Positions 5,556-61,850 of a DNA stretch of 64,000 nucleotides are shown here, piece after piece. Location of the stretch: contig ADNK01000427.1 in the NCBI GenBank assembly GCA_000320545.1, positions 186,001 through 250,000 of the forward strand, written 5' to 3'. Below the pieces are notes generated by a model. That model saw only the letters and a program-made list of their open reading frames with translations, ran no database searches and had not been told where the DNA came from. The position numbers and the translations under genes were made by a program. Numbering within the stretch: position 1 is the stretch's first letter; every line of letters begins with the position of its first letter. This stretch comes from Bigelowiella natans CCMP2755 (lineage: Eukaryota > Protista > Cercozoa).

Positions 5556-6463
5556 GGCAACCTTCCGGAGCCCTTAGCCGTTGCTGGGATGGAACTGGTA
5601 AATCTTGTAATTCCGAACGAAAATCGTCTAGAAATACAGGCAAATTATCGATTTTCATTTTTGAATCAAACAAATGACATTTTAGGTGGAGAATGCCGGA
5701 TCTCTCCGTAATTTTGAGAGTAACGGCAGTTATTACGGCTGCTGGCTGCCGGCTGCTGAAAAAAATGTAACCACCCCAGTCCTTATTTAACGACGACAAA
5801 GCGAGGACGGTCAAGTGTATTTTTCGGCTTTTTGGTGCCATGCGTAAATTACTTGATACATCTATCTTTGGATGTCGCTTAATATAAACGATATGGTTTT
5901 CTCTCATTTGATTCCTTGGGTGTCGTAGATAAGTTCCTCATCTTTTTACACTTGATTCAGACTGCACATTTCCTCCTGCTCATGTGGACAAACTTAGGGG
6001 AAAAGTGTTTAACATCAAATATGTATTGATGTCGCAATAAAATAACATAAGGGTTTCTCGCTAATTCCTTAAAAAGATTTAATTCTCAATCTGGAAAGAG
6101 GTTGGGGACGGAAAATCTATTTTGTGGGTTGGCATACTGTGTGTGTGTGTGGTGATGTATACACGTGTGAGCTGTGGCATTGGAGGGAGCGAAGACGATA
6201 GTTTACTGAGAAAGCATAATCGATTACCAACTAATACTGTCCCTCTAAAAATTTAACTCACTTTCAATGCGCAATGTTTTGTCATTCGTTTTAGGTTAAA
6301 AGAAAAACAAAGTTGGTGAATCGTCACCGGTTGTCTCCTTCACTTTGGTAAGCTGGAATGCTTTCCTAAGATGTTCGTTCTCTTAACGATCAATTTTTAT
6401 AGGCGGATAGAGAAGTTCGCATTTGAAACCCCCAGTCGAGGAGGTCGAGAGCATTTTTAAAGG

Positions 6464-9400
6464 ATGGAAGGCTTTCTGGAAAAATCGGGCGGGCTCAGTG
6501 CCTACAAGAAGCACTTTTTCCGGATGCAATCCAGCCAATTGCTTCAATTTAAATCAAATAAACCCGGAGAAAAGTGCAAGAAGTATATACCGTTGGAGAA
6601 CGGAAAACTTGTAGCGGTATGTATGTATACTGTGTTTACCAAGCCTTATTATGAACTTGTTATGAAGTGCCTAAATTTCCGGTATATTTGAATATTAGGA
6701 TCGTAAGGATACACGAGTATTTCGCTTAACATGCAAGGGGAGAAACTATTTATTTCGTGCAAAGGATCAGGAGATGTGTAATCTGTGGTTAGAAGCTTTG
6801 AAAGGCGTTGTCAGAGAGCATGACGTATCTAGAAGGTTTGACATTTTCAGCTTTATAAGCAGCCAAAGCGTAGCAGATTTCTTACTGATGTTCATCACTT
6901 TAGATCTGGAGGCTCCCTCTCTTTAAGGAGTCTTGTAAGCAAAAAGAAGGTTAGTAATGCACGCAGAAAGCTTACTACAAACTCAAATATATATGAATTG
7001 CCGCCAAGCTGAATATCTCTTGTTGATAAAGGTTCGATACACGGAAGACGGCTTCAATTTGGACTTGACCTACATCACAGACAGCATTATAGCGATGGGC
7101 TATCCAGCAACAGGAGCCGAAGCCATGTACCGAAACCCTCTCTCAAAAGTCAAAAAGTTATTGTCAAAGAAACACCCAGGGAACTACAAAGTCTACAATC
7201 TTTGTTCCGAAAAAACCTACGACTCAAAAACTTTCCAACAGGTTGATCATGTCCCTATATTAGCTTAATATCTGTGACTATTTTGGTGCTTCGAAATAGG
7301 GGGAGCTCAGTTTGGTAATTGTATTTTTATTTGGTCAGTTCGCTCATTTTCCGTTCACGGACCACAACACGTGCCCTCTGCACATTATCAAGGAATTCTG
7401 CGATGACGTACATGAGGTACCCGGAAATAATAGAGTACATTGAAATGAGGTCGTTGTTGATTCTGTGCATGTAATTTCACAACAGTGGCTCGAAGGTGGT
7501 GATGAACGTGTGGTCGCTATTCACTGCAAAGCGGGCAAGGTGACGAAAAACCTTTTATTCTTTACTATATAATGTTCTTCTTATTGTATTGGGCTTATTG
7601 TGTTATCCGGCTACTTGTACGTAAAGGGCCGCGCTGGGATGATGATATCTTCCTATCTCATTCGAGCTGGAATTTGTGATTCAGCAGAGGTACAGGCAAA
7701 ACGCTATCTTTGTCGTGGTCGAACAAAAAAGTATCTGTGTTTGATATGGAAAATCTTAAATTGTTCAGGAAGCCTTACAGCTCTTTGGCGACAAAAGATG
7801 CTATGATGCAAGGGGTGCTGCAAATTTAATTAGTCAATTTAATTTATCTTCTTTCTAAAACTGTAAATCTTAGTTGATAGTTCTTAATAATTGTTAAAAA
7901 CCCGTTTCATAAACTAATCTAGGAGTAACCATTCCATCGCAAAGGCGTTCAGTAGAGTATTACGAAAAGTAAGTTCTTCATGACTGAGATATGAAAATGT
8001 GCTTTTCCTGATCAAGTTTATGGAACACTATTCTCTAGGTATCTCAAAGAGTACATTTCAGTAGATCGCCCATTCCCGTTCGATGCCACCGTAGAACTGG
8101 TGCATGTCAGGATGTACACCACGGTAGAGCCAGTGTTAAGCAATTTATTACTCGATTGAGTTTTCTGATTTGTTGATTTCATAATGGGCAGCCAAACTTC
8201 GACCGGAATGGAGGATGCAATCCCTACTTCGAAGTCAGAAGATACGACGAGGAAACGTAATTTATATTCAAACAGTGTTGTTTTTTTGGCGTTGTTGCGT
8301 TTCTTGCATATTGAATGGCAGAATACATAATGATGATTGGTATTCCTCAGCGGAGAAATAGTGGAGATTTATGACTCGCAAATGCACCACGAAGTAAAGA
8401 AAGTCAGACAAGAGCCGGTAAGTGTCTTTGCAGATAGTCTAACGTTTTGAGGTGCTAATAGATGAAAACTCTTTCTCAGTTTATAGATATACCATGCCGC
8501 GTGGAATTGAAGGGAGATATGAAGATTCGCGTTAGGGATAAAGATCATTTTGGTATTATAGCTCATCACATTTTTGAACGAGTAATATGAAATTGTAAAC
8601 CCTTAACAATTTTGTTTAGGTAAAGATGATTCTATGTTATGGTTGTGGTTGAATGCCGCATTCTGTCCAAAGAACGGAAGGATTCTTCTCCCTAAGGTAA
8701 ATATAGAACTCAAGCATATTTTTACGGAGTTTCCGTTGTTTTCTTCAGGGATGCAGTAGTAGTTAGCATTGATTGAAAATCTAAATGCTGACTGAGCTTA
8801 TAAATCTTAGGATCAGTGCGATGGAGCTATGAAAGAGAACAAGAAATGTTTCGCAGATAATTTTAGGGTATGGCACCTTGTTTTTAGTATCGAGTGGAGG
8901 GAAGCTTACGGCTATATTTTTTTGCAGATTGTCTTGTATTTCGGGGCTCCTCCTACGAATTTAAACCGAAGCTTAGCATCTCTAGGTAAAGGGATAGATT
9001 GTTTTTCCATGCATGATTAAGGGAAACGATTTTCATAGCGAACATAACTTTTCATATCTCTCGGCAGAATCCCAAGAAATGTTGAAGTCAAGTTCATCGC
9101 TAGTAAGAGCTCTCGTTAGCAAAAAGAAGGTGATACATCATTTCTATGGGATTCGCACACACTGTTGTTGCAACAACATTTATATATACACATATATTTT
9201 TTCTTTACTACCAAATGGGTCTTATTTCTATCTTCAAAACACCTCGAAGGTCCGATTCGTCAAGGATGGTTTCGATCTGGATTTGACTTACATCACCCCC
9301 CAACTGATAGCTATGGGGTACCCATCTGAGGGAACAGAAGCTGTTTATCGAAACCCGATGTCCCAAGTCCAAAAGATGCTTAAGACGTACCACCCTGCCC

Positions 9401-11238
9401 GTTTTAAGGTGTACAATCTCTGTGCGGAGCGTGAATACAAAGCGGAAAAGTTTGGCGGCGAAGCAAGTTGCGCCCATTTCGGTTTTTTTGACCATAATGC
9501 TTCTCCATTGAAGATGGTGTACGATTTTTGCCTTGATGTTGAGGCTTTTCTCAAGAGGGGGAAAGACCACGTCGTCGCTGTTCATTGCAAAGCTGGTAAG
9601 GGCCGAACCGGAATGATGCTCTCGTGCTATTTACTGCACTGCAAAGCTTGCAAGACTGCCGAGGAGGCTCTTACTCTGTTCGCAGATAAACGTACCGCAG
9701 ATGGGAAGGGGGTTACAATCGCCTCTCAAATTCGTTATGTGCACTATTACGAGCGTTTCCTCAAGGAATACCTCTGGAAAGACAAGCCGTTCAAATTTTA
9801 CCCCAAATCTAAGCTTCTGCATCGTGTGAAGTTCGGCCCCGTACCGATTTTCGATAGCATGAGCGGTGGCTGCTTGCCATATTTCCATATTCTCGACCCT
9901 AATTTGAAGTGCATCTTCAAAAGCACCTCGCAAACGCAGATCAAGCTGGCGAAGGGGAATGTCTGCGAAATCGAAGTGCAGGCTCTGCTCACCGGTGATT
10001 GCAAGCTAGTGTTCTACCACGACAATTCGATAGGAAAGGACGATAAGATGATGTGGTGTTGGCTCAACACTGAAATGGAGGGCAAAACCGTACGTTACGG
10101 AAAGAAAGAGCTAGACGGGGCCTCTAAGAAACACAAGAAGATATTCGAAAACGACTTCGTGTTGGAATTGTCGATGGAGGAGATAAAGTCTCGCAAGATA
10201 TCAACTGCTATGAAATCTGGTATTGCGGAATTAGGCTCCCAACGTCTAAGGAGAGTATCTTCGACTGTAGTGTCAGATGATGACGGAAATGTAATGTCCA
10301 TCAAATACCCAATGAAAGATCTTGCCGCATTAGCCTTCTCTACAAGCACTACAAAGTCTATTGAAAGCCATGGTGCTTATCTTGCTGCAAAGCATCCAAG
10401 TTCGCACAAGGTCTACAACCTCGGCAATGAACCTATCTATGATAAAAACAAGCACGGTGGGAAACTATCGAGCTTTGATTTGTCGCCACTGGAACCGGCA
10501 TCACTGGAGAACATCGTCAATTTTTGCAAAGATGTGCAAGAGTTTCTTAAGGAAAAGAAGGAGAATGTTGCGTGTATTTACTACAAAAATGGTAACGGTG
10601 TAATGATGACAGCTTGCTTCTTGCTTTGGGATGGCAGGTGTCAGACCTCGCGAATGGCTGTCAAGCGTGCGAGTGTCAATTTCTCAGATGATGTTAAGCT
10701 TTCAACCCCGCAACCGAGCCAAATCCAACGAGTTGCAGATTTTGAGATGTACCTAAAGATGTTCAAGGCCGTCAAGAGACCATTTCCATTTGAGGGCATA
10801 AGACGCCGTTTGCAACGAATCATTTTACACACTGTTCCACGCTCCAAGATTGGGGTGAAATGCAAGCCATGGTTTAGGGCTTTCAAGAATAATCGCGCTG
10901 TTGCGACGTGTAAACCGAAGGCTGGAACAGCTGATGATGGAAAATTGCGTTTGCACGTATCAAATTGTGTTCTCAAGGGAGAAAACAAATTAGTATTCTA
11001 TGATGACAAAGAAACCAAACCACTATTTTGGATATGGGTTCACACAAGCTTCATTCCCAAAGGAAGCTCCAGAGTGTACTACGAGAAATCCAAGATTGAC
11101 GAAGCTTCCAAGGACATCTCGTGCAACATCTTCCATGAAGAATTCATGGTTGAGGTATGGTGGGAGGAAGAGGACGAGGAAGAGGATGAAAAAAATGCAA
11201 ACGGATCAAACCAGAATTCTGATGGAATTGAAATGTGA
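6464..11238 (+). CDS. PH domain followed by three tandem PTEN-like phosphatase+C2 modules (two with intact active sites, the third degenerate)
   Basis: PH: MEGFLEKSGGLSAYKKHFFRM...YLFRAKDQEMCNLWLEALK. Module 1 (spliced): LVSKKK-VRYTEDGFNLDLTYIT...FTDHN...HCKAGK-GRAG...GVTIPSQRR. Module 2: DGFDLDLTYIT...FFDHN...HCKAGKGRTG...GVTIASQIRY. Module 3: HKVYNL...CIYYKNGNG...PSQIQ. An in-frame TAA sits two codons upstream of ATG 6464. Confidence 0.92.
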
Positions 11239-11349
11239 TTTGCTTGCCCATCTTTTTCATAAATAGTAAAATGTACATTGAGCGTACCTGTAATGTAACT
11301 GGCTTCGCAGCAGTTATTAAAAATATTTATATTGGTGCACAAAAGATGA

Positions 11350-12050
11350 ACAGCAGCACGTACATATACGTACGATAAAAGCATTGCTGTATTTGCTTCC
11401 GATCCGCGCCACCATTACCAGCTACTTGCCGTTGTAAAACGCTATGCAGTGTCATCATTTCTTCTTTATTTGCGAATATCCTGCATCGTTCGTGCATCGA
11501 TCGCTATCATAGTAGGGCATCAGCATGCACGCAGGTGCAACATGCAAAACGCAAACGCGCGCCATGCGTACGAATACTCGCGTGCACAAATATATATGGC
11601 CTACACAGTACTGTATCGTACTGCAATATATATTGGTCGTGTCTCGGATAATCTATTATATGCGCTATGAGACAAAAGTAACAGATGAATTGAAATTTTC
11701 AAAGGCCATCCTAATATATGTAACAATGCTAGAATGCATGCAAAGCTAGCAACGGTCATGTATGCTACGTTGGCGTGCCGGTCTAGCTAGCGTGCAGCAC
11801 GATACGATCCTATCGTATGTAACGCCTTCATGCGTGCGTGCAGTACGTGCATGATCGTATATTAACATACCAATGCAATATCAGACGGCTGCATGCAAGC
11901 AAAGTAGCGAAACCTGCGGTGTGTGACAGCTAGCCGCAGCCACTCTAGCACTAGTAGAAGCCCCACGCTCACAACATGGAACATCGATAAGCAATCGCCT
12001 AGTTACCTGCGCTGCTATTTCATTTCATCATTCATCGCCGAAACAAATAG
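11350..12050. other. Palindromic-tetramer tract 2, convergent spacer
   Basis: gcatgcacgc, gtctagctagcgtgcagc, gcagtacgtgcatgatcg; lies between the PTEN-like gene(+) and NDUFAF7(-). Confidence 0.7.
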
Positions 12051-12164
12051 TAAATCCAAATCGAAAAATTTCCTCATAAATAGATAAATCAAAGCGCAAC
12101 TTGCAATAACATTAGTAAGCACCATCGTCGGGAAGCTTATGCGCATCTATGTAATCGGCCATTG

Positions 12165-14191
12165 TTACTGCATATACCCTTCAGCATCAGCTGGAAACCT
12201 TCGATAGTCGTCAAGAAATTAAGCATTACGAAGACGCAACAACAATAGTCTGACAACAGTTTTCATTACTACACCAGCATTGTACTTACCCTGCGGGCGC
12301 CCCGATTCCCGTCTGTGTTATTGCCATCACCTGCGAAGAACACAGATATTAATGTGAAATTGTAATCTGTTTGTGCTCATCCGAAAACGCTGTGGCTTAC
12401 CTTGAAGAGTAGCCCCATTTCATCTTCAGAGACCAGACGCTACGTATTTAGTTGAGCGATATTGAGGATGCATACGCATAATGCATAAGTAGAACTGTTC
12501 GTCATATAATGAGATGTATCTTTTGGCTAAAATGGAAGCGATGTGCGAAGGATATTTGTTTCGTGTGAGTATCTATGATCGTGGTTAAGTGAATGCTGTG
12601 TGACCATGACAGTCCTTTCAATGTTCTCTTTCTCTTCCTCCGTTGCATGTTCGCACAAAGCTGACATTCTTGCCTCTGACAATGACAGAGAAACGACGGA
12701 GATGGTGACGATGCCAAACGGTTTTAACAGCCAAAATCCGGAGAATTACTCCTCAATATTCTATCTAAAGAACAAGGCAAACCTATGTTCATGTTGATCA
12801 GAAATGCTCCCTGTGGCACGATAGGGAATACCTAGCGTAGGAATCAGCATCATAGACGATGAAACAATCGATGGTAACAAGTTGGAGGGAGAGCACAAAT
12901 TTAGTGCTGGGTGCGACGTTGCACATCCCATTGATGCCGCGAGGCTCATCATCATATTAAGGAGGAAAATGTATCTTCAAACTTGAAGGTTGTCCGGTGA
13001 AGCTCTTTGGGCAGCACTCCTGCCGTCAAAAACACCATGTAGAGCTCGATGAGAAAAGGCATGGACGGGTACAGATGGGAAGACGCAGTTGCGGAACACG
13101 TAGGAAGAAGTAGCTGAGTACCGTAGCGAGCTGAAATTGACGTGTGCACTCAGGTCCACCTGCCGACAATGATGATGATGATGATGATGATGACGATGAT
13201 GATGGTGATGAAAGTACAACGTCTTGCAAGTCGAATCACAAATGAAACATACAAAGCGACAGAAGTTGTGAGCGCGCTACCTCCCTACTAAGATGATGCT
13301 TGGACGAGTGAATGGTGGGTACCTCTCCGGGGGTTTCCAATACGTGTGCGAACTTGTGCTCTTTCACTCCCTTTTGATAATAATCATCATCGAGAGAAAC
13401 CAAAGCTTCCATTCAAACAACGTCTTAGTGCGTGCGTGCGTGCGTGTGTTGGTGAACACCATCTCTTCCCGAATCGATTAGAATGTGATGGAAAAAGTAA
13501 AATGTATCGATGAACTAAAGAGTTGCGGATGTAGTGGACATTGGTTCTAATTTCATCATCCATTGGACTGCTGCTGCTGTTTGATGCTGCTGTTTGATGG
13601 TAGTATGCGGTTGGTTGGCTGTCTGCAACCACCAGCACCTGCAGCGTTCCTTGTTGCGGAAAGTCTTCTCCGTAGTCCACTACAAGGCATGCACCCCCTA
13701 ACAACAACAACAACAACAACAGTACGACACAACACAGCATATAGAATAATCTCAAAAAATGCAAAAGTACTCTTCTTGCATCATCATCATCATCATCACC
13801 ACTGCATAATCACTATTATCATCATCATCATCATCAGCAGCAGTAGCAGGAGGAGGAGGAACAAAGGTTTATCCGTCTGTCCACTTCGTTTTTTGATGAT
13901 CTCTGAACAAGGTGTGGTTGGCGTTGTGAGTATTCTCTATTATTAAGATGTCAAGTGAGGGCAGCATCGTCCTCGTGGTTTTAATATGTAAATAGCGGAT
14001 CTTAGTCTTGACTTCATTCCCTCTTCCCCCGCCCCTGGTTTTTCAACTAAAGAACACCTTGATTGCCAATCTTCTTGGCGAGCATTTCCATGGTAATGTC
14101 TCGATATGGCCCTACTTCTAGCCTACAGATCATTATTGATGATGCCGACAATTCGAGACAAACTCCGAATCTACACGTATACATTTACATA

Positions 14192-51805: not shown

Positions 51806-54800
51806 CTAACCTTTTTCCTCATTAGATTCCACTATCTTTTCTATGGCCATTCGGAGTTGTGTGAAATTCCATTTTTTACTTCGTGAATCGAAGTATTTGG
51901 TCACTGTTGACATGATTTTGCTATTATGGAAGTCTTCCAGGAAGGTCTTAATTTTCCCCCGTGTATCTTCGGAATAGTATCCCGATTTCTCAATGGTTTC
52001 TTGAAACCAATCGGAAGCTATTTTCACCATGTCCGGGTTAGAAGTTATGAGTCGCATATATGTTGTCAGAGCTTCTGTTGAGTCGATACAAGGGATCACG
52101 ACATCCATTAGGGGTGAACCCTTTAATGCTGATTTGACTAACTCGCTTGCGGATTGAGGCACAGGCAGTGTAAATAAAGTAGCTTCCTCAATCATTTTCT
52201 GTATTTCTTGGTTTGCTGAGGCTTTACCTCTTATCTCTTCCCACGTTAAAATTTTCCATGATTTCTCTTCATCTTTAACTCCCTTTTCACTGTCGCCCTT
52301 GCTGTTAAGAATTCCCTTCTCTTCGAGAAGTTGTGTCAGCTTCTCACATCGAATTCGGTTGCATTGTCTCTGCAAATCCTTCAAATTTCGGCATTTTTCT
52401 ATTTCCCGAATATTTTCCTCTGATAATGTGAAACTAGGGATTACATTTGTAGTACTTGCCTTCTTCAGTTGTGAAACAATCACAGATACAGTCTTCTTCT
52501 CTGCTATTTCCAACACCTCAGAAACCGAGCCGCATCCCTTGAAATCATCTCTATCTACGTCCGCATACGGTTTCAGAACGCTTTGAAGCACTTGGGAACA
52601 GACCTGGACCGCACAAGAACTAATCGCTGATTGAATGGGTCGCTTCTTATCTAAAAGGGTTTGTTTTATGGAATTAAAATCGATATCTATTCCGTGATCG
52701 TTGAGAAGCTCAGCACCGCTCTTCAACCTTGTCGATACCACGTGTCGCACAAAGTCTTCCATCGTAGCAAGATCCAAAGACGGTTTCGTGATGATGTAAT
52801 TCTGGTTAACCATGATCATCATCATCATCCTCTCCAAATGTGTAAGCACTTCAGATGTGGTTTGCATCATCGACAGGGACGGAATACCGTAAACACCAGC
52901 ACCCATCAGAGTCCTATTCGACGTAAAAAATGAATTTAACGCTTCTAATCCTGACTTGAAATCGTCAAAAGACATCGTCCCCGTGCGAAACTTGAGAATA
53001 GAGGCAGTCAGTAAATCTTCAGGATTCCCAACACCTATAATGGATGCTATTAGTGACATTGAAGGAGACTTGTCAAGAACACCCTTTAGCATAGTCCCCA
53101 CAGCATCTGGCAGTTTGTTTTCCAGTGAGAGCAAGTTCTTCATGTCTTCTCTGTCACTAGCAAGTTTTGAGATTTCTTCCCAAGTTAGATCTCCAGCGGC
53201 TACAGCTTCTCCGACTTCGGTCAGATTTTCTTTCGCGAACCTTTTGAGAAATTTCCTGACACCGTTGATGGTGGTGCTCTGTTCCAATTCCTTCTTCTTA
53301 TGCTCTGGGAGCGTTATTTGTTCCTCAATGATGCACGTAAAATGCCTGACGAGAATAAGCTCGGCTTTTTCGAGGACACTTGCAACGGTGCCACAGCCTT
53401 TGAATTCACTCGCCTCGACTTTCCGTTCTAACACCAGAGGCGCTACATTTTGGAAAAGCTGAACGGTGAGCTCAGTACCACAGAGAGGCCCAAGTTCTGC
53501 TATGTGTATGTCCTGGTCAGTCAGGATATTGACTATGCTCTCGGGATTGAGGTGTATATCGAATTCCTTCAACTTTTGGGCGCCCTTGAGTACAGCTTTC
53601 ACGGCAGCAGATCGCACTGCTGTGTTCATATCTCCTATGGTAATGTGACTAATACTCCTTTCTTTGCTCTCTGCTCTCTCCTTCTCAACAACGAAAGTAC
53701 GCAAAATTGATTCTACAGATTCAAGTGAAGATGAGACCATCTGCGCAATTTTAGGCAATCTCGATGAACTCGGATATTTTGAGGGATGGAAGAAAGAAGT
53801 GAGGAGGGCTTGTATGTGCCCTACACTTAAAGTGTTATCCTCGAAATGTTCCACAACCTTTGTCAATTTCGTAACAACTTCTCTGTCAAATGTTTTGATG
53901 AGCTTAAGATTAGCACTATAAATCTTCGATACGTATGGAGGAATCCATTCTTCCTGATCTGCCACATCCAAAACAGTCTTCATAACATCCATTAAATGCT
54001 CCTTCTTACTGAACAGATTTTGTATGATATCAATCGGACTACCAAGAACGGAAAAGAAATCTGTGCTGATGCATGGCATTAGAAAGACCGCAGGAGAGTG
54101 CGTTTCGATGAGAAAATCACGGAGGATATGATCGGCTCTCTCAGGAATAATAACTTTTTCCAACAATTTGTTCCTCAAATTCATTGCTCGCTGGTACTTC
54201 ATACGCTCTCTACTTGATAACCTACGAACATCGACTTTACGCAACCTATTTTCGAGATTCGATGGAGTTTCCATCGGGTGATGCACCCAATTTTTATGCC
54301 TTACTTCTTCAAGACATTGCGATCTTAAAATATTCTGGACATGGTGCCTCAGACCAGCGAGATTTCGGATCGTTATAAATTGCTCGGGGGAAGTGAAAAC
54401 CCCCTCGTTACACAATCTTTCACCAAAAACTGTGACCAAGATACCTTCCATCTCGTCAAGCACCTCGCTGGTACTTGCACAATGTGAGAAAACTATTTTC
54501 TCCTCTGGGACTTTGTACTTCCTAAGACACGTCTCAGAGAGAGATTTTGTAAACTCCGTTGCTAGAAGCTTATAAGAAATTTTCTTTTGATCACGGACTA
54601 GATCCAGAACTTTGGATGGATTGAATGCAATACTGTTTTTTTCGGCTATATCTTCTAGCATTTTCACAACCTTCCTCACAACTTTGGTGACAAATGTTTG
54701 AGTACTCCAAAGCTCCTGCCCAAAGTCAAATCCAAATTTCTCCAACCAAATCGTAAAGAAAGCATCGGTAGCCCTTTCAATCGCCTCTAATCGCCTTAGT

Positions 54801-57800
54801 AGTGATATGCTGGCGGATATTTGCTCTCGTGAGAAATACCTTGGATTCGATACTAATGTTCTCATTTTTTGGAGAGCATTTTTAATATGTGAACGCTTTC
54901 CAAGTCGTCGCTTTAGCCTTGAAGAAGCTAGGGCCAGCCCTCCTTTTGCATCGCTGTATTTTCCTTCTTTTTTGTCCTTAGAGTCGCCGGCATCGCTACC
55001 GTTTTGGTCCTCGTCTAGATGCCTGAAAAGCCGCTTCAAAATTGTCCAAAACCTAACCCGCAATTCTTTTGTTCTCGCAATCTTTGTGAGAGCTTTCTTT
55101 AAGTTCGGATCACGGATGTAACTGGCTACTTGGTGCAGTATGGAAAAGGTGAGCGTTCTGAGAATCTTACTCCCAAGTTTCTTGGCGAAAAGAGAATTTG
55201 TGATACTGTCACGCATGGCTGCAAGCATGGACGATATCGAAGAATATACCAAGTCATCCTCTGAAGACAAATTAAAGAAAGGAGCCAGTATGCTGACGTA
55301 TGGATGCTCAGCAGTGCCAAGAAACAGCTCTTTCATGCTCTCTGGCAAACCAAGCTCTTTCATAGGGTCTACTTTATAAATCGTTGTACTTCCTCTTCTG
55401 CCATCTGATGAACTACCCATCTGTTTTCTGTTTGCCTGTAGTACTACAAATTCTTCTAACCCTTCCAAAGTTCTGATCTTTCTCAATGATTTTTCATCTA
55501 AATCAAGTTTCTTCCTAAGCGCGCGTTTTGCATGTCTTATCATGATTTTCTCCGCAGTTCTTTTCATTTTCGGGTAATCATCGACTGGAATGTGGATGTG
55601 GTCTTCCTTTACTCCTTTCATCTTCAAGACGTTTTGAAACATTGCGCTCATCAGAAAGTTCCCTGCGTAATCAATTTTATCAACCAAGCTGTTTTTACCA
55701 TTTTTCAAGGCATCTTCCATTTCCATCATATCGACGCCCAACCCTGGGATTCGCCTGAGCAGAAGGCCTGTAAAAACTTGAATCTCCTTCATAAGTATCG
55801 TCCTTATGATAGATTCTACTTGATTATTTGTTATGTTGGCTAAATTTGCCTTTGAGACTCCTCGAATTCCGTATACCTTGAGGACAATTCTCACAGATCT
55901 GAAGAATACATCCTGTTGTATCAAGGTTTTGAGAAATCCGAACGAGGATTCAAACCCAAACATGTAGCGTTTCATGAAGGCGATGAGTTCGCCTGCCAGC
56001 CATTCCCACTTGAATTGGCCTTCTCGAATTTTCTTCTGCATCGAAGACTCGATATAAAATAGCTCGTTAACACCTCCATTTAGTGATTGAAAGAGCTGGT
56101 GCATTTTATGCGTATTCATTCCGAGGGCCTTTTCAATATCACCAAGCGCTGACGTGATAGACGACAAGAGGCGATCCCATTTGTATTTCAGAGATTCAAT
56201 AAATTCTTCTCTGGCCTTCATAAATGCCTCCTTTTCTTGCACCCCCCATTCCTCATCTTCCACGGCGTGCAGATTTTCATTATGGAAAAAGTCCAAGCTC
56301 TCAAAAAATGAAGGACGCTTATTCTTTTTTTCCAAAGTCGGTGATGTCAAGCCGCTGGCTGTGGAGAATCTGCGAACCATACTTCTGGCAGAGCCAACAA
56401 GAGAATTGGTACTCAATGACTTGGGAATGAAGCTTCGAGCCTTCGTCCCGTGCTTCTTCTTGTCAACGTGAGAGCTTGAATTTACAGATACTTTCCGTTC
56501 CACATCTGCTGCAGGGCAAGGAGGATTTTGCTTGTGGTCTTGTTTATAGGAGCTGTTTCGTCTCTTTTTCTTCGCGCTTAGTTTCCGGTGGATAGCAGGA
56601 GCGTTGCCGTTCTTGAGGAGTGGCATCTGTAGCACGCAATCATGCCGTCATCACATCATCGTCGTTAGTATCATTCTGTACCCCTGACGGGACAAATCTA
56701 TGTGCTTCCAACGAACGAAACGCAAAACATTAAACACAAGGTATGTACAGATGGTATATCTACGTCGTTTCTCAGTTATATTCTCAAGCACACGCAAACG
56801 AATGATACTGCTAACGCAAGGTCCAGACCCCTGTAGGTGACGGAGTAGAGTTGGCCCCCATTCCTGAGTCAGGAGCCCTAGGAGATAACAAATTTTCCAT
56901 TTCCTTCTTGCTATCTTTGCTAGAGGCTGGTTCTCCTTTCCCTCCAGCATCTTCTCCGCTTGCTGTAGCAGGAGAGGCTAAGGAGGGTCCCCCATCGATG
57001 CTGACAATACTTTTCTCTCCCGATTTTACGTCCGAGTTTTTTGACTCGAAGTGCATTTCGTCCCCCTTTCCAAAATCCAGCAAAAGGTACTTTACTTAGT
57101 ATTATGTGACCTCCCAGAGTTGGTGTTGCACCAGAGAAATAGTACCTCATGAATGCTCATCTCACTATCCAGAGAGTATATACTGCTGAGCCCATCATCG
57201 TCTCCGCCATGGTCGTTCTGGTTGCATTTTTTATAAGTTAAAAAAACGAGGCACTTGTTTTTGTGTTTGGAAGAGAAATAAACCTACCCCTGGAAGCTTC
57301 TCATCGTCGTCAAAATCATTGAAGTCATCATCATCATCATCATCATTCTCTCCCCCTTCCTCAGGTTCATCATCTTCTGGATCCCCGAAGAGGATGTGCA
57401 TGGCGTTCCAAACCACGTTCTTTAGCCGTGTAATCGGGTCGAAGACTAATGGAGGAAGTCAAACAAGTTTACGTTTGGCCAAATACCAGTTTAGGTAGAT
57501 TGATGAAGTGATGCGGGATATGCGGCATTACTACCCAATCTGTGGAAATCGAGAGCAATCAGACCCATTCCAACCGTGACCACAATCTGTCAAGTGCGTA
57601 CATACAGCAGCCAATCTATAACACACTACTCCAGCAAAAATGGAAGAAGGTATTATAATAATGACGATGACGACGACGATGACGATGATGGTGGTGGTTG
57701 TGATGTGGTACTTACAGCAAGGAGGAAAGTAAGGATCAGGTTGTTCTGAGCTTCCTGCAAGACGATATCCTTTAGCGAAAATATCGCTGCGTTGGGACAA

Positions 57801-58933
57801 GAACTTCCTTCGATGTCGCTCAAACCTAGAGAAGAAGATGTTAATTGTTCAAATCACATCCGATTATATATATACCCGTGCGTACACAAAGATATGCGGC
57901 TAAATCGCCGACAACTCTCCCTTTATGAGCACGTGTTGATGTTACCAGATGAGGTCTACCATTGCAATCGTTCGTTCAATATGTATATATTTCGTGAAGA
58001 TATTCTCCCTCAGAAATGTGGAAGTTGATACATACTTAATAAATTGCCGCATGATCCTTGGGTTGCCACGAATTCCATCTCTCCCAACCTTAATGATTTT
58101 ACCTCGGACCTGCATCATAGAAATGGATATGTTCAGTATAGCCATTCTTGATGAGAATGTGCTAGATGGAGCTGAATGAAAGCTGCTAGGTCTCATGCTG
58201 TTTCCTCTCTCCCTCCTTCGCTTCCCCCCCTCCCTCAAAACGATTTGTCAGTCTTAAGGAAAATAGTAACCAATCTGAAATGAATTCGGTATTGTTGATC
58301 TTTAGATACAACAACGGGGATCCATTGTACTCGACCCCTGAAACAATAAGACTACGTTTAGGATTATGCCTAATTTCAAGTCGCCAACCCCCCCCACCCC
58401 CCCCTTCTCTCTCTCTCTCTCTCTGAACACATGTGTGTGTGGGTGTTTGTGTGCGTGTGTGCGCACGCATGTATGTGTATATATGTCAGCATGTACATGG
58501 ATGCACACACGGGAGGAGAAAGAACAAGGGAGAGAAGTAAGAGGTATCATCGTATCAATATTGCCTACTATCACCTTCCGGATTTCCCTCTTTGTACGTG
58601 TTAAGAACTGCTGAGAAGACCACTCCGTTTGTTCCGTTTGCATCGGCTTTCGCCGCGTTAACCACCATCTAACCCAAAGTAGAGATCAATCCTTCGACTT
58701 AGTACGGTGAAACCAATAAATCCATCAACCAATCAAACACAAATCCTTCTCTGCGCGACATATAATCTGTACCTCTAGGCCCTGAACCTTCTGCAGAGCT
58801 GCCATCTCAACTTCCAGCAGTGTGAAGACCACGAGAAGCAGTAACATCATGCAGGTAATCTGCACACATTCAAAACCATACACAAATGTAAGCTATTTGA
58901 GTCTTGCCATCGTTACAAAGTGTAACACAATAA

Positions 58934-59024
<91 letters not shown>

Positions 59025-60325
59025 CTAAACGGGGAGGGGGGGTGGTGAGTTCAAAAAGGGGATGTAGTGAGAAGTAAACCTTGGAAGTGAGCACTTCAAG
59101 AACGTATCCTCCGATCTTGCTGGGTTGAAGAATCTAAGTAAAAATCAATTTTAAAATTGGTGGCCATCCTGTAAGTCACTGTTCATTTTATCATTCGATG
59201 GGTTTTACGCTTATGTTGCAAATATATGCGACTACATAGTCATGTTGATGTCGAATGTAAAGAAACGGAGGAAGAAAAAGCAATATCGTGGAGGTTTTGA
59301 CAGGTTTACCAATTCCGCAGTGTCCACTTGGTGCCGCCCTCTGCGAATACAATGAAGACTTCAGTTAACTCCATACATCAAGATTAGAAGAAAAATACAA
59401 TCAAGCTACGAGCACAATTGAAATCATGCTCTCGGATGTTGTAATTACGTCTCTTCGTCATGCTTGAAGATTTCATCGTGCACGTCTCTTCCAAAGTGCT
59501 GCAGATAGGCTCCAGGAGCATTTGTCAAACCTTCCCATTGTTCAAAATTCTCGATCATTTCACAGAGCTTATTTTATTTTGTAGATCAGTGCAACTTCTA
59601 CAGCAAATGCATCGTAATAAATGATACCTAATTCTCCTTGGGCGTTGATTAGCTGTGGGTTTGTGGTCTTAGTGCTCGATTCAGCTTCTGTCTTCTTCGC
59701 TTCGTTCTTTAGATTTTCACTCTGCGTCATCACATTGAAAGGAGCATATGTTAGCAAACAGCGAAGTTCTCTCCCCTCTCAAAATAAAGCCAATGGATTG
59801 AAAACGCAAAAACTCAGTAACCTCTTTGCTTTTGCCCATTGCGTCCATTTCAACTCCATTTTCTAGATCCTATGGATTTATTGATATCAATTGCTAAGTA
59901 TCAACTCTATGCAAGACTGATGCTTAAGCACTTTCTGACCTTAATCTTCCCATCAGCTTTGTCACCATCTTCCTGATCTCCTTCTTGTTCATCGTCTTTC
60001 TCGGCATCACCATTAGCGCATGCTCCACGGCAGCGAATTATTGCTAGAGTAAGATCGATGACGAAAGAGACGAACTGTCCCAGTACTTTTGGAACCTTTG
60101 TCGCTCTACCCGCTCGGCTTCCAACCCTTGCAACTCTTGCCGTCCGCGCTACTACCCCAACAGATCCACTCCCAAACAAGATGTCTGAGAAATCGAGTTC
60201 TACTCCTTCAATCGTCAGTCGAATGAGCGTGAATATTCCCATCACTAACCACAGCATTACGTCACAAATTCTAGTCAGAAGACACATATGTAGGTATGTA
60301 CAATACACTACACACACACACTCAC

Positions 60326-60381
<56 letters not shown>

Positions 60382-60386
60382 TCACA

Positions 60387-60445
<59 letters not shown>

Positions 60446-61014
60446 TGTGTGTGTGTGTATGGAAATATCATCGCGTAGAATTCATATTCACGAGATGTGC
60501 ATTCGACTTCATAATGCAACCATGCCTAACGGTGGACTCCCAGCATTGCACCGCTGCTGCTACTACTACTACAACAACTACTATTCTAAAACTAACTGCG
60601 CGCCGGTCCGACCTCAACGACAAAAGTGAGGAAGCAGACAACTGTAGTCCAGCCAAGTACATTGTCGTACTCTTTTGAAATTTTGCATAATATCCATATA
60701 TCGTGCGCGAAAAGGGCAAACGCCGTCATGAATGTTATCTGTTTAAAATTTGTACAGTGAAGAGAATTGGAGAATAGGGAGAGGAGGAGGAGCGCAGGAT
60801 TAAGGGAGGAAAGAATAGTTAGAAAAAAAAAAAAAAAAAAAGAGGGCGGCGCAACACAACTATGGAGTTCTTCTAGTGTGTTACCAGGCGCCCAAACGCT
60901 GTTGACTTCCTTAGCCTTTCTGCGCAGGTGTTGTCGGTGTCCAAAATATGAACTTTGAACTCCGCATTCTCCCCGATCGCCGCCTGGTAATCCATCATAT
61001 GTTTTGAGAGTACT

Positions 61015-61049
<35 letters not shown>

Positions 61050-61172
61050 CTGAAACTCATCGCGGCTGTACCTTTTCTAGCATGTCGTTTTCAACTTCAA
61101 TGACAACTGTATACATCCGGTACAATTATCAGGAAGCGAATACGATATTAGATAAAGATTATAATCAGCCTA

Positions 61173-61219
<47 letters not shown>

Positions 61220-61254
61220 CGCGGCGGGAACAAACGCAGACAGATGGAGAGAGG

Positions 61255-61296
<42 letters not shown>

Positions 61297-61850
61297 ACAC
61301 TAAATTCCCATTATTTTTCTATGAAATATTAACAAAAATACTACCCTTAAAGGTCATTGTTCCCGAATCAGACGGGTCGTCGAATATGAATATCTCTATC
61401 TGTTTTTCTATTTCTCCTTCTTGGAAGCAAACTAGTTTATTGATGGCTCCGAAGTTTGAGCCTATTTGGTCGAGTGTGGGCAATACTTTATTGTGGCATT
61501 AGAAATTTCCATGAAGATTAAGAATTACCTGGAACGGCTGTTTCAGCAACGGTGTATACCACAACATCGAGGGCCACGTTGGGATCTCCATCACGCTTTA
61601 GCACAGCGGTCACACGTCCTTTGTTCTCATAAACTTGGGCCGATTTGGTGGCCCATTGGATGGTGCATGGTGCAGTAGTTATGTCAGCAACGGAAAGTTG
61701 ACTTCTTAACCCTCTCAGCCTTGAGAATGAATTGTCTCTACTCTTTTTCTGATCTTTTGAGTCTGCTAAATGCGTCGAATTGTCAAGGGGATTGTTCACA
61801 AAAGCCTCCTTGTGGTCGGCGGGTGCTTTTCCAGCGCTGGCCTCCTCCAT
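51806..61850 (-). CDS. Giant membrane protein: Calx-beta domain, voltage-sensor-like TM module, acidic linker, then about 1600 aa of helical tail with internal repeats
   Basis: Calx-beta: [26 protein letters not shown]...[12 protein letters not shown]...[22 protein letters not shown]: [12 protein letters not shown]; [10 protein letters not shown]; S4 [18 protein letters not shown]; [27 protein letters not shown]; [16 protein letters not shown]. The terminal exon is the 1609-codon ORF. Confidence 0.8.

Follow-up and report, generated by a model that had tools for sequence, protein, structure and literature searches.

We analysed a window of 64,000 nucleotides from the genome of Bigelowiella natans CCMP2755 (contig ADNK01000427.1:186001-250000; assembly of 91.4 Mb), whose minus strand carries, between positions 61850 and 51806 of the window, a gene of 14 exons. 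Judged from its sequence and from structure prediction, this one gene probably encodes a multi-pass membrane protein of about 2,197 residues that combines a Calx-beta domain, a voltage-sensor-type module and a helical tail with a non-enzymatic output, a reading to which we give a probability of roughly 55%. The encoded order is Calx-beta, the helices S1-S4 with an Arg-rich S4, a pre-S5 helix, S5, a Cys-bearing outer loop, S6, an acidic linker and the tail, which is intron-less and 1,606 residues long. The cytosolic Calx-beta domain directly ahead of S1 and the six-helix module would form the conserved core. In the literature we found no description of a Calx-beta domain with a voltage-sensor module or of similar protist voltage-sensor fusions, nor of the whole architecture in which a Calx-beta domain and a cyclase-type module are followed by a huge helical tail.

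The exon chain was traced from reading frames and splice sites, a noisy ab initio exon listing being replaced by homology mapping, and the window exons were searched singly against profiles and databases. The window has 43% G+C and contains many microsatellites. All 13 introns are of the GT-AG type, the phases agree at every junction, and the exons sum to 6,594 nt, that is 2,197 codons plus the stop codon. The exons are listed below in window coordinates, with their matches to hidden Markov model (HMM) profiles of the family, expectation values (E) and identities to the related proteins P0003, P0013 and P0015, which are introduced further on.

61850-61529, minus strand: exon 1 (E1), start codon, low-complexity N-terminus and first half of Calx-beta (about 61706-61529)
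61461-61345, minus strand: E2, second half of Calx-beta; foreign-family HMM 29.5 bits, E 1.8e-9
61012-60885, minus strand: E3, end of Calx-beta and linker to S1; family HMM positions 173-206, E 1.3e-5
60738-60597, minus strand: E4, S1 and S2, with F-x-x-E in S2; family HMM 54.7 bits, E 4e-17
60307-59940, minus strand: E5, S3 (with Asp), S4 (60150-60097), PKVLGQ segment and acidic insert; family HMM 77 bits, E 7.5e-24
59133-59080, minus strand: E6, amphipathic pre-S5 helix; family HMM positions 471-491, E 5e-6; P0003 74% identical
58859-58773, minus strand: E7, S5; family HMM positions 488-520; P0003 52% identical
58668-58575, minus strand: E8, outer S5-S6 loop; donor ambiguous, 58575 or 58569
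58337-58271, minus strand: E9, outer S5-S6 loop
58109-58036, minus strand: E10, outer S5-S6 loop
57825-57716, minus strand: E11, end of the outer loop and start of S6; family HMM 23.1 bits
57586-57535, minus strand: E12, S6; family HMM positions 631-647, E 4e-5
57445-57288, minus strand: E13, post-S6 helix and acidic linker; family HMM positions 647-667; P0013 and P0015 at E 1e-5
56626-51806, minus strand: E14, intron-less tail, 1,606 codons plus stop; acceptor ACAG/ATG at 56626

E1 begins at the first ATG of its open frame (61850), ends at the donor GTAATT and is separated from E2 by a GT-AG intron of 67 nt. E3 is 59% identical to residues 196-222 of the transcript protein P0013 (tblastn), while E4 reaches 60-62% identity to P0013 and P0015 and is also aligned by the cyclase fusion P0008. 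S5, in E7, has a hydropathy peak of 2.29. The outer loop, encoded by E8-E11, shows conserved Cys and N-x-T sites; it gives four collinear matches to family HMM positions 523-631 and is matched by P0013, P0015 and P0017 in tblastn. S6 is followed by VFDPITRL across the E12/E13 junction. The open frame of the tail comprises 1,609 codons, of which the likely acceptor at 56626 leaves 1,606 coding. A low-complexity open frame at 57065-56816 might be an extra exon, but it is out of phase with the acceptor at 56626.

The exon model is validated by a profile built from the N-terminal modules of five relatives and containing no window sequence, since on the minus strand of the window this foreign-family profile finds 13 matching segments, all of them in the profile's own order and with profile coordinates that abut at the exon junctions. 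E1, for instance, corresponds to profile positions 61-119, matched at 61706-61527. A paralogue and foreign transcripts repeat this order of 13 segments, which puts the chain far beyond chance. A first-pass annotation, made from the letters alone, had placed in this region a Calx-beta domain at about 61300-61670, an S4-like helix, a further segment with a transmembrane helix and a final transmembrane helix. Each of these has its counterpart in the chain: the Calx-beta domain extends across E1, E2 and the start of E3; the S4-like helix lies inside E5, which scores 77 bits against the foreign-family profile; the segment after S4 and the next helix are the pre-S5 helix of E6 and S5 of E7; and the final helix is S6, in E12, running into E13. 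Several introns are filled with (TA)n, (CA)n and (GA)n microsatellites of considerable length (60310-60595, 58380-58520, 58900-59030 and 61150-61300), which create long spurious open frames on both strands.

The genome contains one paralogue of exon 5, on contig C1940, with 42% identity. When S2-S4 of both B. natans copies were used as query in a whole-library HMMER search, 12 proteins were returned, the best of which are long proteins with the module near the N-terminus. They include two transcripts of MMETSP with complete open reading frames (ORFs), P0001/P0013 (2,566 aa) and P0002/P0015 (2,440 aa), and a protein of Cymbomonas tetramitiformis, P0005/P0016, annotated only as 'Calx-beta domain-containing protein'; P0011 and P0003 are fragments among the best matches. 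P0017, annotated as hypothetical in Amorphochlora amoebiformis, was added by a word search. Of the relatives that bear a species name, the nearest is a chlorarachniophyte, and the family has so far been seen only in chlorarachniophyte-like algae and one prasinophyte.

The membrane module has the charged residues of a voltage sensor. S2 reads FVVE (exon 4) and S3 reads ICDVM (exon 5), and under the splice model the S2 Glu and the S3 Asp are as far apart as in P0013. S4 bears five Arg and one Lys at steps of +3, +3, +4, +3 and +3; in a 15-row alignment, the only near-invariant columns (≥90%) are two Arg and one Gly of the S4 motif. When the paralogue is aligned with CatSper1, the Glu of S2, the Asp of S3 and the arginines of S4 fall in the same positions in both. 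Pfam Ion_trans (PF00520) is matched by the paralogue with 18.7 bits and by relatives with 18.4-23.3 bits (E 4.5e-5 to 1.3e-3), and in the paralogue and four relatives these matches cover positions 3-138 of 241, that is S1-S4 only. Comparison by hhalign with 13 Ion_trans domains of the same genome gave E 2e-4 and a probability of 46% over S1-S3. We infer from these features that the module senses voltage, with the Calx-beta domain and the tail predicted to be cytosolic and the glycosylation-type sites outside.

The more remote matches of the whole-library search are the most informative. P0008 joins a six-helix module to a Guanylate_cyc domain, and the family profile matches it with 96 bits on S1-S4 and, collinearly, on the pre-S5/S5 and S6/post-S6 helix segments; an F-x-P-I-x-R segment after S6 is common to P0008 and window E13. 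The EukProt transcripts P0007 and P0009 consist of the module followed by PDEase_I, with ankyrin repeats ahead of the module in P0007, and the family profile scores 50-67 bits on them. Over S3-S4, E5 can be aligned with both phosphodiesterase fusions and with the cyclase fusion. By sequence homology, the membrane module of the window is thus related to the modules of cyclase and phosphodiesterase fusions, and the likeness to AC-alpha-type adenylyl cyclases proposed in the first-pass annotation holds, the comparison partners being proteins of the same architecture rather than named Paramecium or Plasmodium sequences. A diplonemid protein, P0021, is matched by the family profile with 50 bits and by weak collinear S5 and S6 matches (-0.3 and 5.3 bits); by eye it reads like another cyclase fusion, and Pfam gave no family for it at E <= 1. 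Fusions of an ion-channel-like module with a cyclase are attributed to ciliates and Plasmodium by Weber et al. 2004, as cited in PMC10651576. For the phosphodiesterases, TgPDE4 of Toxoplasma has an ion-transport domain (PMC7720076), and we found no study of voltage-sensor-type phosphodiesterases beyond this one-line remark on TgPDE4.

Neither enzyme accompanies the module in the window. Genome-wide scans with Guanylate_cyc (PF00211) and PDEase_I (PF00233) gave no match on the window contig at E <= 0.1, and the tail ORF has no cyclase or phosphodiesterase match in Pfam at E <= 1, in line with the absence of cyclase motifs noted at the outset. On these results we rejected the idea that either enzyme lies concealed in an intron or in the tail. 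The possibility that the module is carried by the genome's own cyclases was also ruled out; these are of the soluble type and lack the module.

The Calx-beta domain (PF03160) is split over E1, E2 and the start of E3, and because of this split single window exons score weakly against Pfam (15-17.7 bits, E 0.0036 and 0.025, for a cut-off of 27 bits). E2 covers positions 53-94 of the Pfam profile, and the only Pfam match of E1 is the Ig-like aBig_2 (E 0.0024). The domain is nevertheless clear in the relatives, where it scores 42-58 bits, above the Pfam cut-off, and the foreign-family profile spans E1-E3 in order. The family profile also matches CBD1, the Ca2+-binding domain of NCX1, with E 7e-25. 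The Ca2+ ligands of NCX CBD1 are an acidic cluster, DDDxxEED, after strand E-F and a C-terminal DDD. Aligned by eye with NCX1, the window domain reads FDDPSDSG at the acidic cluster and lacks the C-terminal DDD; it retains the first two Asp, as well as the Glu in the 'ENxG' turn. Since the acidic cluster is only partly kept, Ca2+ sensing by this domain is possible but not supported by the sequence.

The tail consists of a basic Ser-rich linker, a head domain, three tandem repeats of about 300 residues and a C-terminal end. Its main parts are as follows.

56263-55001, minus strand: head domain A, tail residues about 125-545, the part best conserved with relatives
54868-53861, minus strand: repeat R1
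53863-52901, minus strand: repeat R2
52933-52016, minus strand: repeat R3

The internal repeats (E 4e-11) share the motifs F-K-G-C-G-x-V-x-E-V-L-E, LTWEEI and SP-x-M...PCI, and they occur nowhere else in the B. natans genome. That the head domain is a degenerate fourth repeat is only hinted at by sequence comparison (hhalign E 8e-4, 25% probability). The acidic linker and the helical tail of 1609 aa described in the first-pass annotation correspond to the real frame of 1,609 codons, and AlphaFold2 (AF2) models of repeat 2 and of the head are both entirely helical, with predicted local distance difference test (pLDDT) values of 68.7 and 64.8. The tail was also described there as unrecognised, and indeed no relative of known kind was found by Pfam, which returned noise only, by a word search with the whole tail, or by ESM Atlas, Foldseek and VIA; the AF2 models being of middling confidence, the missing fold match is weak evidence. 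An EF-hand_6 match at tail residues 533-546 (E 0.2) was rejected, as the loop lacks the hydrophobic position 8. In the Cymbomonas protein P0016, residues about 1080-1700 have internal repeats of their own (E 4e-8). PF26726 (Helical_RasGEFs) is a tentative label: the Atlas suggested it for P0016, and P0021 carries it as a precomputed annotation.

On the reading that we prefer, a change of membrane potential would move S4, and this movement would reach the post-S6 helix by way of the S4-S5 segment and S6, as is thought for the cyclase fusions. Instead of switching an enzyme, the movement would reshape a non-enzymatic helical scaffold or alter its partners, and the Calx-beta domain may add control by Ca2+ or by a partner at the cytosolic face.

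Several observations weigh against this interpretation. In the module, one step of the S4 charge spacing is of four residues, and the relatives remain below the Ion_trans cut-off (18-23 against 25 bits). The window exons have no Ion_trans match at E <= 10 and the membrane exons none in the PDB at E <= 10 (phmmer), while the family profile finds no PDB channel at E <= 1. The window copy is moreover the more divergent paralogue, with the sequence VEVGPAR where S2 meets the cytosol. The Ca2+-ligand cluster is partly degenerate, with DDPSDSG in the window against DDDxxEED in NCX CBD1. As to the tail, the AF2 models are supported by five to seven sequences (pLDDT 65-69), and its conservation is confined to chlorarachniophyte-like members; the tail of Cymbomonas P0016 is not detectably homologous to that of the window. 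Because the Cymbomonas tail differs, the conserved unit is Calx-beta plus the six helices, and the tail is, by sequence, lineage-specific or fast-evolving. A tail of such limited distribution is more easily understood as a scaffold peculiar to one lineage than as a conserved output. The term 'effector' for the tail is an assumption, given that the Cymbomonas relative carries a non-homologous one.

Since it is the core of the protein that is conserved, a pore-forming channel whose tail is structural has to be taken seriously as a rival; we regard it as possible, on balance doubtful. The protein would then be a true ion channel of four subunits whose S5 and S6 line a pore under the control of S1-S4, with Calx-beta perhaps adding gating by Ca2+. 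The tail would do no more than serve as an anchor or a gating ring, like the scaffolds of other channels that have large cytosolic domains. The complete six-helix layout with an S4-S5-like segment suits such a channel, as does the conservation of Calx-beta and the six helices across lineages whose tails differ. An intrinsic K+ conductance has also been ascribed to the homologous Paramecium cyclase (Schultz 1992 and Weber 2004, as cited in PMC10651576). The pore itself argues otherwise: the Ion_trans matches end at about position 138 of 241, leaving the pore half unmatched, and no PDB channel is matched by the family profile. Where a filter would be expected in a channel of this type, no selectivity-filter motif was recognised, the S5-S6 segment being a Cys-rich loop that comprises about 150 residues in P0013 and similar relatives and about 116 in the window exon model.

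A wider reading, the most novel one, is rather unlikely in our estimate. The cyclase-type module would be a portable voltage-to-cytosol transducer that protists have joined to at least three partners, namely a cyclase, a phosphodiesterase and the tail, and the tail would be a new voltage-controlled output. If this were true, the tail repeats with their F-K-G-C-G..EVLE and LTWEEI motifs could form a scaffold that binds partners in a potential-dependent way, or else an unrecognised enzyme.

It is improbable that the S4-like helix is a look-alike in an unrelated multi-pass protein, or that the window copy, a divergent paralogue, has lost sensing. Such a view could draw on the absence of any score of the window exons against Ion_trans or PDB, on the degenerate S2-S3 linker of the window copy and on an hhalign probability of only 46%. 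Yet the F-x-x-E of S2, the Asp of S3 and the R/K ladder of S4 are all kept in the window copy, and the relatives match S1-S4 of Ion_trans repeatedly and in register. The whole-library search, too, returned Ion_trans proteins, among them P0012, which is above the Pfam cut-off.

The module and the tail are a single gene, as the sequences of relatives indicate and as the first-pass annotation had assumed. P0013, P0015 and P0017, all from relatives, each join Calx-beta, the membrane module and a tail homologous to that of the window. The window tail matches residues 861-981 and 1237-1348 of P0013 and residues 864-973 and 1551-2382 of P0015 with E 9e-12 to 5e-14, and it can be aligned end to end with the tails of the transcript proteins. 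In the C1940 paralogue, Calx-beta, S1-S6 and then collinear tail exons lie on one strand. The same arrangement is seen in L021 (ENA ERZ28548057, contig_20494), which encodes P0003 and has the N-terminal module at 6453-8183 and tail matches at 8612-12824 on the same strand. Module and tail are thus found together in at least six loci or transcripts, and from their joining in relatives' transcripts, the paralogue and the ENA contig we conclude that they belong to one gene. It is very unlikely that two adjacent genes, for a Calx-beta membrane protein and a separate helical protein of 1,609 residues, were merged in the first-pass annotation: the 661-nt gap between E13 and E14 does contain the low-complexity frame at 57065-56816, the big frame does have an in-frame Met at the proposed acceptor and no joined transcript is known from this organism itself, but the complete-ORF transcripts of two relatives and the Amorphochlora model unite the module with a homologous tail, the order is identical in the paralogue and L021, the E13-E14 splice is phase 0 to phase 0 with an ACAG acceptor, and the tail repeats have no other location in the genome.

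The copies differ in their exon structure. The C1940 copy, at about 51520-38000 on the minus strand (L003, L004 and L005), has its tail in at least 10 exons, against a single 4.8-kb exon in the window, a contrast that fits intron loss at the 3' end of the window copy. It is also nearer to the foreign transcripts and more canonical in S2-S3 (FEWIITAMALGSSYYW..GFLD). In L021 (56% G+C), the module from Calx-beta to S6 is nearly intron-free, against 13 exons in the window.

Among known systems, the AC-alpha fusions of Paramecium, Tetrahymena and Plasmodium, to judge from P0008 and P0021 as proteins of this architecture, share with the window protein S1-S4 with an S4 of the ARxARxxRxGxRAGR type, the pre-S5 helix and S5, as well as a long outer loop, S6 and a post-S6 F-x-P-I-x-R helix. 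In contrast to them, the window protein has no class III cyclase, carries Calx-beta before S1 and continues after S6 into an orphan tail of 1,600 residues. The ion-transport phosphodiesterases (TgPDE4, P0007 and P0009) have a homologous S1-S4, to judge from the profile scores of P0007 and P0009, which indicates that the module has been reused with different cytosolic partners; P0007 and P0009 lack Calx-beta, whereas the window protein lacks PDEase_I. Ci-VSP, Hv1 and SLC9C1 (PMC10651576) resemble the window protein in coupling S1-S4 to something besides a canonical pore. They have S1-S4 alone beside a known enzyme or transporter, whereas the window protein keeps S5 and S6 and adds a tail of an unrecognised family. 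With voltage-gated cation channels of the Ion_trans family, the window family has in common the S1-S4 pattern and the charge-transfer residues, but it scores under the Pfam cut-off, its pore half is unmatched and it shows no filter motif. The Calx-beta domain belongs to the same domain family as CBD1 and CBD2 of NCX1, and in both proteins it is probably cytosolic; NCX1 has a pair of them inside a cytosolic loop, whereas the window protein has one, ahead of S1, with its acidic cluster partly lost.

Few families couple an S4-type sensor to something other than a pore, namely the VSP phosphatase, Hv1, SLC9C1 and the protist cyclases (PMC10651576). A further family of this kind would widen the range of cell functions under the control of the membrane potential, and its natural relatives with a cyclase or a phosphodiesterase on the same module would provide a comparative set for the transmission from S4 to the cytosol.

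Elsewhere in the window, the plus strand carries at 9013-11238 an open frame of 741 residues with a PTEN-type C2 domain (E 2e-34) and a dual-specificity/PTP phosphatase core.

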